DNA of 63,741 nucleotides, filler included, from Perkinsus chesapeaki ATCC PRA-425 (taxonomy: Eukaryota; Protista; Perkinsozoa): the NCBI GenBank assembly GCA_013115145.1. It is 7 parts of 7 records of this genome, joined end to end, with 100 filler letters (N's around TTAATTAATTAA, not from the genome) between each part and the next. Parts side by side here need not be neighbours in the genome. Positions count along the whole stretch, not along the records: positions 38,344 to 62,500 come from JAAPAO010000551.1; 6 more parts are not named here. One strand, 5' to 3'. The position numbers and the translations under genes were made by a program. Below are positions 55,029-57,272 of the stretch, in pieces; within the stretch, counting starts at the first letter, position 1; each line of letters begins with the position of its first letter. The notes beneath the pieces are model-generated. The model was not told where the DNA came from, did not search any database, and was given only the letters and a program-made list of their open reading frames with translations.

Positions 55029-57272
55029 TCATTGAATTCTCTCTATTACCACACTTGTTGCTCCTCCACCACCATTACATATAGTTGCACAACCAATACT
55101 ATAATCATTCTCCCTCAGAATCCTAGTTAATGTCCCCACCAGTCGTGCTCCAGATGCCCCGATTGGGTGGCCCAACGCCACCGCCCCACCGTCAACATTA
55201 ACCTTCGATGGATCCAAGTCGAGCAGCTTCATATTAGCGATCGCCACCGATGAGAACGCCTCGTTGATTTCCCAGACGTCGACGCCCCTGAATAATATTC
55301 CAGGAACCTTTTCAACTGAAATCCTACTATTCCAGACTCCCCAGCTGCTGAAATTTCTGAGCACCTTTCTGTTGGATATGGGTGCAATATAAACTAGCCC
55401 CGAAGTTTCATTCCTTTACCGACAGGTTTAGAGGATAATCCTCATAAATATCAACAAAGGCGTACGTGAACAGCAGCAGCGGGTTATGACCTCTTTAGGC
55501 CACCAACGATAATGTAATAATAACACAGCTTACTAATGGATTACAGTGATAACCCTTTTAACGACTAACTCTCATACACCCTCTCACTTAGGTGTCATGC
55601 CTGCCCTTTGTAATGCTATTCTAGCTGCACCTGCCGGGGATATCGAGAAATCAATAGGATCCTGTTCAAAGTCAGCCCATGATACAATCCTAACACATGA
55701 TGACACTCTAATCGATCACCTTGGCGAGCGCTACTTTCACCTCGCCAATGGAGTCAATCCCTGCTCCCTCGAGAACTCTTCACTAACAAGCACTAGTGCC
55801 GCTGCACCATCATTGAGTTTGGATGCGTTAGCGGCGGTTATGGTACCATCCTTAATAAATGCCGGGCGAACCGCGGCAACTCTTTCGATCTTCAAATTGG
55901 TATACCTACATCCAACATTCACGTCAATGAATTACGCTTACATCCTGTTCTACTCCTCATCACTGTAGAAAATCTTTGGTTCGCCGCCTTTGATCGCCGG
56001 TGGCACTTCTACAGGGAACGCCTGACGGTATAATCCCCAAATACAGACAGCAACGAGCATCGCCGACCTCATTTTTCATTTTCCCTCTACTCCAGGCAGC
56101 CGCGGCTCTTTGGTATGATTGTATGGCATAATCATCCTGCAGATTATGATTATGATGAATTGTCCCCTTTTGAGATGTTGAGATGCTCCTACTTGCTCCT
56201 CACGGGTGATGCCAAACTCTTTCACAGTTTTCTCCGCGCATTTTCCCATGTGAATGTCATTGTAGACATCCCAAAGACCATCTTTAAGAACAAGATCCAC
56301 AAGTTGCCCATGCCCATACCTAACAAAACAACATCTCTCTTAAATCAGAGCCCGATTAGTTCAGCTGGATAGAATGTCTGCCTACGGAGCAGATGGTCGT
56401 AGGTTCGAATCCTGCATCGGGTATTACTTATATCCTCCACTACGTGCTTCCGTCAATGCATGTGGCACATTACTCATTGACTCCATCCCTCCCGCTACTA
56501 TCTAAAAACCATAGCCTATCCAACTAATCGAAAGACGTGAATTAGTACCACATCAGCCTCTCCAATGGCTATAGATGAGGCTGCTAATGAGACTGCCTTC
56601 ATACCACTGCTGCATACTTTATTAACACTCATCACTTGGGTTGATGATGGTAACTTAGCAGTTAAAGCTGCTTGACGTGCCGGAGCCTACATAGATGAAT
56701 CGAATAAGAAGAAGAAGAAGAAGAAGAAGAAGAAGAAGAAGAAGAAGAAGAAGAAGAAGTAGAAAAGTATTGTAGAGCCCGATGACCATCACATACTGAG
56801 AAGGCGGTGATGCTGCTACTGCTGCAGTATTTAATGCACCATCAGCCACTACTGAACTTCCCATTCCAAATTACCCACACCAGTAGCATCCTTTCTATCA
56901 TAATAACCATGGCGAGATTTTTCGATTTTTGAGTGAAAGTAGTTCCGTACGGGGATCGAACCAACGACCTTCCGATACAAAGACGCTCGCACTAACCCCT
57001 ACACTATCCTATTACCTGCCCACAAGCTGCCGATATAACTTGTCCCATTATGACTTGATCCACTTCATCGCCGTCTATCTTCGCTTGGGCTAATGCTCGG
57101 GTAATGGCCTAAATCACCTCATAATCCCTTCCAAATGTTGCATTACGTGCGCTCCCAACTGAGGTGCTTTAAACGACGACAGCCTCCCCAAAAACGATCC
57201 AATAGGTGTTCGAGCATAACCAACAATCAATGCAGATCTCGGTAAGGAGAGGGCACGAACTGATGTAGGCAT
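55029..57272 (-). CDS. ACAT1: Acetyl-CoA acetyltransferase (thiolase II, ACAT1-like)
   Basis: [22 protein letters not shown]|[90 protein letters not shown]. Confidence 0.97.
56320..56427 (-). other. 108-nt thiolase intron occupied by an antisense tRNA-Arg gene
   Basis: Exons join GGA-TAT-AA|G-TAT-GGG-CAT (GGYKYGHG). Donor GTAATA spans 56427-56422 and overlaps tRNA positions 72-73. Confidence 0.9.
56350..56423 (+). tRNA. tRNA-Arg(ACG), identical to 54864-54937
   Basis: Same 74-nt sequence with unrelated flanks; no T4 terminator immediately downstream (TTACTT). Confidence 0.95.
56706..56759. repeat. (AAG)18 microsatellite in a thiolase intron
   Basis: Pure AAG run just upstream of the acceptor at 56687. 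Confidence 0.95.
56941..57010 (-). pseudogene. Degenerate tRNA-like element (A-box + B-box, anticodon arm lost) starting 5 nt after the donor of thiolase intron 56687-57015
   Basis: AGGATAGTGTAGGGGTTAGTGCG...TCGGAAGGTCGTTGGTTCGATCCCCGTACGGAACT. Confidence 0.65.

Follow-up and report, generated by a model that had tools for sequence, protein, structure and literature searches.

An antisense tRNA-Arg gene in a predicted thiolase intron of Perkinsus chesapeaki and tRNA-like relics at the splice sites of nearby genes

Can a tRNA gene become a spliceosomal intron? The question is raised by a minus-strand gene for a mitochondrial-type acetoacetyl-CoA thiolase in Perkinsus chesapeaki, whose fourth intron consists largely of a tRNA-Arg(ACG) gene in antisense. 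The window is a stretch of 63,741 nt assembled from parts of this genome (GCA_013115145.1), of which we analysed the piece at positions 38344-62500 (JAAPAO010000551.1). The origin of new spliceosomal introns is a long-standing question, and the clearest known sources are transposon-like introners. Over the 24 kb of this piece, several unrelated genes have introns that seem to come wholly, or at least at their splice-site ends, from tRNA genes with their terminators for RNA polymerase III (Pol III), lying in either orientation. The intron described here is a real and unusual feature. Around it runs a broader pattern that has apparently not been described, a hint that introns of this genome are built or remodelled by copies of tRNA genes.

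A thiolase intron filled by a tRNA gene

Delimited from the frame, the thiolase gene has 10 coding exons and nine introns of 38, 329, 47, 108, 56, 46, 48, 51 and 300 nt. Across the fourth junction the frame reads ...SGGY + AA / GTAATA ... TTAG / G + TAT GGG CAT GGG, the first G of exon 5 closing the lysine codon ahead of YGHGQLVDL. Exons 4 and 5, searched one by one, are colinear with solved thiolases (PDB), with a difference in loop length of 1-3 residues at most. Among the matches to a search of 1.84 billion representatives, thiolase fragment P0051 has ARSGGYKYGHGQL unbroken across the junction, and the alveolate Digyalum oweni has ARKGGYGYGHGQL there. Because homologues run through ARSGGYKYGHGQL without a break, we take the GT..AG junction at 56427..56320 to be right; its removal restores the conserved thiolase protein, as for a U2-type intron. 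The sequence is thus a predicted spliceosomal intron with a junction supported by homology. It terminates in ...TGTTGTTTTGTTAG at 56320, and CTGAT, about 25 nt upstream, may serve as the branch site.

The piece holds just two tRNAs according to ARAGORN, and Rfam agrees; both are tRNA-Arg(ACG) and score 61.8 bits. The intronic one (RF00005, gathering score 29) covers model positions 1-71 with all stems paired and no non-canonical pairs, and since its E-value is 1e-12 in the 1151-nt stretch searched, its presence in intron 4 is not due to chance. It accounts for 69% of the intron (74/108 nt), carries an exact B box, GGTTCGAATCC, at 56402-56412 and has the A-box-like sequence TAGTTCAGCTGG at its positions 8-19. 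An initial annotation of this DNA had described just this arrangement, namely an intact 74-nt antisense tRNA-Arg in a 108-nt thiolase intron, a donor GTAATA that is the complement of tRNA bases 72-73 plus the trailer, and 30 nt between the tRNA 5' end and the acceptor; every one of its figures proved correct by ARAGORN, Rfam and the frame.

The second tRNA lies 1412 nt away in inverted orientation. The two copies are identical at 74/74 positions, and the identity spans 76 nt (tRNA + TT) and ends there, so that at that end the repeat unit takes in the whole donor except its GT. The twin has a TTTT terminator at +1. The intronic copy has no terminator of at least four Ts: its trailer is TTAC, the first run of three Ts comes at +195 and the first of four or more at +495 (494 nt without such a run). 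By its sequence, the intronic copy is intact as a gene but without a canonical Pol III terminator, and its function as a tRNA is predicted. The initial annotation had called it the youngest state of a series. That label does not follow from the 76-nt identity, which recent copying, gene conversion with the inverted copy nearby or selection for a functioning tRNA could explain. As a separate observation, the twin ends 10 nt before the ATG of a 64-codon minus-strand open reading frame (ORF; 54854..54660), so that this tRNA heads the next possible gene.

Towards the acceptor, the 30-nt tail resembles neither the flanking sequence of the twin tRNA nor any other part of the piece. In the predicted fold of the pre-mRNA, the complement of the acceptor stem pairs and closes the antisense tRNA, leaving GUAAUA and the tail free.

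Two neighbouring introns also contain tRNA-like sequence or repeats. The start of intron 2 matches tRNA-Arg nt 42-63 at 18/21 positions, and deeper in the same intron lies a plus-strand (GAA)n microsatellite of about 20 units (56702-56767). In intron 3 (56502-56548, 47 nt), CGATTAGTT is directly followed by GGATAG; the two correspond, in sense orientation, to tRNA-Arg bases 4-12 and 18-23 and agree at 15/15 positions once a 5-nt deletion is allowed for, a match that 10% of random sequences equal in simulations. This stretch and the antisense tRNA of intron 4 would flank exon 4 (74 nt) as an inverted repeat.

tRNA relics at other splice sites

Is intron 4 an isolated case? The B-box motif GGTTCGAATCC occurs 8 times in the piece with at most one mismatch, against 0.41 expected (~20-fold), and 21 times with at most two, against 5.2 expected; several of these matches keep the variable-loop GGTC at the right distance. 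TTTT stands exactly 12 nt after the B box, the first base past a tRNA end, in 6/21 matches, where 0.13 are expected (p = 3e-9). One of the six is the intact downstream gene and the other five are relics that have kept their terminators. In all five, a splice dinucleotide, AC (antisense GT) or AG, lies within 0-5 nt of the terminator. GTAAAA-type donors are read backwards from TTTTAC at 42550, TTTTTAC at 58570 and TTTTATTAC at 59308, and acceptors are read forwards at 58724 (TTTTATTAG) and 42913 (TTTTCAG). The reversed TTTT terminator gives donor positions +3 to +6 in three antisense relics.

Relics with a B box are present in 6 of 14 delimited introns, spread over four unrelated genes (TMEM144, METTL21, DHHC and thiolase; Table 1). 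Five of the six are antisense, with the tRNA 3' end 11-25 nt behind the donor, and the sixth is sense; the recurrence of polarity and donor geometry that the initial annotation had proposed is thus borne out. By our count, the terminator end is turned towards the splice site in about 10 of 11 relics. The annotation had missed the sense type, in which the T-run and AG appear to form the acceptor: tRNA 3' halves at 42895-42949 and 58704-58793 (the latter with the site ending at 58704) continue from TTTT into CAG or ATTAG, like ready-made acceptors. The relic at 42913 resembles tRNA-Arg at 20/23 positions.

The METTL21-like intron also resembles tRNA-Arg: its reverse complement agrees with nt 34-63 at 24/29 positions (83%), a score reached by 1/1000 shuffles, and its donor is GTATCC. 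The DHHC intron keeps A-box-like and B-box-like motifs at full-length tRNA spacing, with TTTT at +12 after the B box. Its upstream border agrees with the P. olseni homologue and its downstream border is placed by frame continuity through the next two exons only; Pfam did not confirm the small DHHC exons downstream of it. The initial annotation had arranged such introns in a series running from the intact tRNA through a degenerate full-length copy to a B box. The members of that series do exist, the 91-nt DHHC intron with its full-length spacing and B-box-only introns of 43-55 nt, but the order of decay is not established, and the half-tRNA introns may instead be born as 5'-truncated copies.

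Table 1. Positions of the thiolase features, the two tRNA-Arg(ACG) genes and the introns with tRNA-like relics, numbered along the window
Feature	Positions	Strand	Length and content	Basis
Thiolase gene	start codon 57272, last sense codon end 55032	(-)		
Thiolase intron 4 (predicted)	56427..56320	(-)	108 nt, GT..AG, phase 2, between ...SGGY(K) and YGHG...	frame, splice motifs, PDB alignments
Thiolase exon 4	56501-56428	(-)	24 residues + AA, end ...ARSGGY + AA	translation, PDB thiolase matches
Thiolase exon 5	56193..56319	(-)	G + 42 residues	translation, PDB thiolase matches down to E 1.7e-11
5' splice site GTAATA of intron 4	56427-56422	(-)	complement of tRNA bases 72-73 (56422-56423) + trailer TTAC	
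3' part of intron 4	56349-56320	(-)	30 nt, complement of tRNA 5' flank; pyrimidine-rich run, AG, putative branch site CTGAT	
Start of thiolase intron 2	56942-57015	(-)	intron of 329 nt; GTAATA, then sense degenerate tRNA (variable loop + T arm)	
Intact tRNA-Arg(ACG)	56350-56423	(+), antisense to thiolase	74 nt of intron 4	ARAGORN, Rfam
Twin tRNA-Arg(ACG)	54864-54937	(-)	TTTT right after discriminator; 91 nt past thiolase stop codon	
METTL21-like intron	48666-48708	(+)	43 nt; antisense tRNA-Arg-like 3' half	frame switch matches P. olseni and P. marinus proteins
TMEM144 intron A	47452-47506	(+)	55 nt; antisense B-box relic 15 nt behind GTGAGC donor	ORF continuity; Pfam PF07857 (gene and strand)
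TMEM144 intron B	47655-47722	(+)	68 nt; antisense B-box relic (1 mismatch) 25 nt behind GTAAGT donor	ORF continuity; Pfam PF07857
DHHC intron	59338..59248	(-)	91 nt; antisense degenerate tRNA still ending TTTT, at the donor as GTAATAAAA	
Candidate intron	42577..42528	(-)	50 nt; GTAAAA (complement of TTTTAC) + antisense tRNA 3' half, exact B box	ORF continuity only
Candidate intron	58598..58553	(-)	46 nt; GTAAAAA (complement of TTTTTAC) + antisense tRNA 3' half	ORF continuity only
Candidate intron	42949..42895	(-)	55 nt, sense type: GTGAGT ... tRNA 3' half, TTTT, CAG acceptor	ORF continuity only
Candidate intron	57335..57288			ORF continuity only

What kind of element could have left these traces? 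Acceptor sequences differ among the relics, which therefore do not derive from one element. Their 3' ends consist of the discriminator base and a T-run, and none continues into CCA or into an A-rich or repeat tail. As for target-site duplications, there are only a GTA that two introns have both at their own start and at that of the following exon, and a CAG/CAG pair in a single candidate of the sense type; no inverted termini were found in the thiolase locus, the sole stretch scanned for them. Several known sources were considered and rejected. A retrotransposon primer-binding site would show TGG for CCA, which is missing; a tRNA-derived short interspersed element (SINE) does not fit a T-run directly after the tRNA end with no body and no A-rich or repeat tail; and Dada transposons have the A box as their target, with no transposon ends present here. 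The GTATCC donor of the METTL21 intron was not taken for a U12-type site, since Alveolata gave no sign of minor introns in one survey (PMC10639083). The complement of the B box was tried as a branch site and does not fit YTNAY. Global alignment of short introns to the thiolase intron was discarded, since end gaps were not free and relic-free controls also scored well.

Rfam did not detect the relics at lenient thresholds, and ARAGORN at low thresholds returned mostly noise; at the 85% threshold it made a weak 'tRNA-Tyr(ata)' call at 58713-58793, where the acceptor stem is broken. Pfam gave no identity for the host genes near 42.5 kb and near 58.5 kb. In the relics, the B box is better preserved than T-stem or acceptor pairing, a contrast biased by the fact that the relics were found by their B box.

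Two observations on the host genes stand apart from the relics. Three B-box-like 11-mers with two mismatches each (46554, 46730 and 46915) lie on the coding strand of the Pfam-supported exon 1 of TMEM144 (669 nt), where ~0.14 would be expected. The DHHC palmitoyltransferase is 63% identical to its P. marinus counterpart and 46% to that of P. olseni, and gaps in the alignment to these Perkinsus homologues point to two short, in-frame, stop-free introns at 59677-59820, of 51 nt (GTAATATG...) and 45 nt (GTAAAAGA...), through which a 180-codon DHHC ORF reads straight.

Possible insertion into an exon or into an older intron

How did a tRNA gene come to fill intron 4? We tentatively favor insertion into coding sequence, a reading in which the insertion itself would have created the intron and to which we give slightly less than an even chance. 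A copy of the tRNA-Arg(ACG) gene with two trailer Ts and some 5' flank, made presumably either as DNA or by retrocopying of a pre-tRNA, would have entered the thiolase in antisense at ...AA^GTATGG... and would have survived because it was exactly spliceable. The donor GTAATA, a form common in these genes, would consist of GT followed by the trailer and tRNA bases 73-72 in complement, and the A-rich 5' flank, complemented, would provide a pyrimidine tract and AG. Folding of the acceptor stem in the antisense tRNA would bring the donor and the branch region about as close together as in the usual introns of 40-55 nt, and the tRNA may still be expressed. Intron 4 would then belong to a local population of introns based on the 3' ends of tRNA genes, in which the Pol III terminator also serves splicing: TTTT(..)AC would act backwards as a GTAAAA donor, and sense TTTT(..)AG as an acceptor.

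Several features argue for creation, among them the B-box enrichment, the TTTT at +12 and the relics in 6/14 introns described above. The 76-nt repeat begins right after the GT of the donor, and the antisense tRNA is closed in the fold by its acceptor-stem complement. The non-tRNA remainder of intron 4 is 34 nt, below the shortest intron seen here (38 nt) and below the minimum of P. marinus, whose introns are mostly <100 bp and at least 39 bp long (PMC3101222). Some short introns are tRNA-like almost end to end, the 43-nt METTL21 intron leaving little room for anything else, and the orientation of about 10/11 relics with their terminator end to the splice site is what creation from tRNA ends would give. 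Finally, the K^Y site is not common to any visible homologue.

Is this site really vacant elsewhere? Wherever both flanks are readable, in metagenome loci and distant homologues, exon 4 runs straight into exon 5, both in the intron-bearing eukaryotic contigs L050 and L051 and in the intronless contigs L001 and L002. Fragment P0171, from a 5.2-kb metagenome contig, is identical at 24/30 aligned residues by our count and has GGYKHGHG unbroken. Other thiolases are interrupted nearby: plant genes carry a phase 2 intron after ...EAR, 4-5 codons upstream (P0011, P0039 and P0040), the animal-like fragment P0159 has one after YGG, about 3 codons downstream, and P0171, P0127 and P0101 share an intron inside HMG^CAE. 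Judged from these alignments, the loop is a region of heterogeneous intron positions, with three sites within about 10 codons in addition to the recurrent HMG^CAE. Intron 5 of the P. chesapeaki gene, after REEQ, is shared with plants, so that ancient and non-shared intron positions are mixed in this gene. The initial annotation had proposed to check whether orthologous thiolases have an intron at GGYK^YGHG; none is present in the distant homologues that can be read across the site, but fragments P0055 and P0074 start 0-8 codons upstream of Y and may have an intron there. The closest genomic relatives found, L001 and L002, are freshwater metagenome contigs of 47% GC whose intronless thiolases are about 70% identical and of equal loop length. 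The metagenome scan gave no close relative, its best match being at 66% identity.

The METTL21 relic gives a second view of age. The ORF is 58-61% identical to P. olseni proteins and has a P. marinus orthologue (XP_002788233), with which it shares the position of the relic intron; the annotated P. marinus protein P0049 and P0001, an unspliced ORF of P. marinus type, diverge exactly at that junction. By position, then, this intron is old, and tRNA-like content can sit in old introns. The sharing agrees with the view of the initial annotation that B-box-only introns are old, but an 83% likeness to the present tRNA-Arg is hard to explain by neutral decay in an intron whose position is common to P. 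marinus. Read through, the P. marinus METTL21 intron encodes G-F-E-L, the peptide expected from an antisense B box, GGATTCGAACT; back-translated and compared with the P. chesapeaki intron, the read-through gives no significant match (p about 0.2 anchored, about 0.08 local).

Several observations weigh against creation by insertion. Intron gain is rare in general. The antisense fold is no more stable than shuffled sequence (z = -0.5), GTAATA donors are found in relic-free introns too, and the K^Y comparison draws on distant homologues only. Other objections are at the same time arguments for a rival explanation, that intron 4 is a nested gene: a tRNA-Arg copy would have landed in a pre-existing intron, perhaps as a retrocopy of a pre-tRNA whose synthesis was primed at the donor's A-run, or else through copying during repair, and the intron would have been trimmed until the trailer overlapped the donor. 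Relics at splice sites elsewhere would then be the leftovers of trimming under pressure for short introns, with the T-run replacing donor positions +3 to +6 or the pyrimidine tract. The 30-nt tail is not tRNA-derived, resembles an ordinary intron 3' end and is unrelated to tRNA flanks, and TMEM144 intron A likewise ends in a non-tRNA pyrimidine tract. Short introns with and without relics are equal in size, and the METTL21 relic occupies a position shared with P. marinus. An exon of P0055 and P0074 may start at or near the same residue as exon 5. No convincing target duplication was found at intron 4, where it comes to the 3-nt GTA that also suits the splice consensus. Insertions into introns are, moreover, far commoner in general than intron gains. 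Intronic tRNA genes are known elsewhere (PMC4999229), and P. marinus is unusually rich in tRNA genes, with hundreds of copies of single tRNA species (349 of tRNA-Leu-CTT and 116 of tRNA-Gly-GGA; PMC3706591).

We regard the nested-gene explanation as quite conceivable and only a little less probable than creation by insertion. It needs integration exactly after GT, or trimming that halted at an intact tRNA; the original intron would have been 34 nt long, under the observed minimum; it offers no direct reason why 10/11 relics face their terminator to the splice site; and no visible homologue has an intron at K^Y.

A third explanation, compatible with either origin, is that the elements are under selection: intronic B boxes would be kept for binding of TFIIIC, in the manner of extra-TFIIIC (ETC) sites, or as an aid to splicing, and the intact tRNA-Arg would be a working gene. 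It would account for the 24/29 match of an intron that is old by position, for the G-F-E-L of the P. marinus read-through, for B boxes that outlast T-stem and acceptor pairing and for a tRNA intact at 74/74. Against this stand the search bias behind the B-box contrast, the local p value of about 0.08 for the P. marinus peptide, the 494 nt without a T4 terminator downstream of the intronic tRNA and a B-box complement unlike the branch-site consensus, and we consider selection unlikely as the explanation. That there is no real intron at all, the thiolase being a pseudogene, mis-assembled or spliced at other sites, is highly improbable: an alternative acceptor at 56335 does keep the frame open, but it would add five residues seen in no homologue, whereas all ten exons are open and colinear with thiolases and the predicted junction yields ARSGGYKYGHGQL as in P0051.

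If insertion created intron 4, the amplified tRNA genes of perkinsids might be intron makers in general. Such 'tRNA introners' would be full or 5'-truncated copies that keep the Pol III terminator, insert in coding sequence and are spliced out by way of that terminator, which would serve as a GTAAAA donor when antisense and as a pyrimidine tract with AG when in sense. For this broader proposition the case is tentative, and we think it rather less probable than its opposite.

Intron gain and known systems

Why would tRNA-made introns matter? What is observed in this piece is the anatomy of intron 4, its junction, the enrichment of relics and their geometry. Borne out genome-wide and among Perkinsus species, the pattern would amount to a testable mechanism that ties amplification of Pol III genes to the structure of Pol II genes, with dated examples that range from the intact copy to relics whose positions are common to more than one species. 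'tRNA introners', if true, would add a new source of intron gain that does not involve transposons, and would help to account for the higher intron content of Perkinsus compared with dinoflagellates. Our literature search, both on introns derived from tRNAs in general and on the introns, tRNAs and introners of Perkinsus, turned up no account of a spliceosomal intron that stems from a tRNA, and a 2024 review of transposon-derived introns mentions no tRNA- or SINE-derived introners (PMC11282704). Even if the tRNA landed in an old intron, a splice site shared with the end of a tRNA that has lost its terminator is unusual.

Several known systems invite comparison. ETC sites are isolated B boxes bound by TFIIIC in yeasts and are mostly intergenic; the B boxes described here likewise occur without a full tRNA gene and are possibly conserved. 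In Daphnia, filler DNA at repaired breaks has given rise to introns, and one intron derived from mitochondrial DNA is also known, each as a single event. These cases would share with ours an unrelated piece of cellular DNA copied into an exon and flanked by a short direct repeat, but here one class of donor sequence recurs many times. In mammals, antisense Alu and other SINEs supply splice signals, their poly-T creating the acceptor of a new exon inside an old intron. Here too, a Pol III-derived element would lend its homopolymer end to splicing once it stands in a Pol II transcript; what differs is that the terminator run would make up the intron's own donor when antisense and its own acceptor tract when in sense.

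Intron-nested tRNA genes of C. elegans also place a Pol III gene within a Pol II intron, and can do so on the opposite strand (PMC4999229). The P. chesapeaki tRNA gene differs from them in that it takes up 69% of its intron, shares its last two bases with the donor and has no T-run terminator. Also close in outline are the introners of Micromonas, Aureococcus, Symbiodiniaceae and Amoebophrya and the introner-like elements of fungi (PMC11282704, PMC7789003). Unlike introners, the putative source here is a set of ordinary Pol III tRNA genes with varied acceptor sequences and no consensus element, no terminal inverted repeats were found and the flanking repeat is 3 nt at most. Like introners, the whole intron would be an inserted, repeated sequence, related inserts stand in unrelated genes, and the splice sites lie at, or are made by, the ends of the insert.

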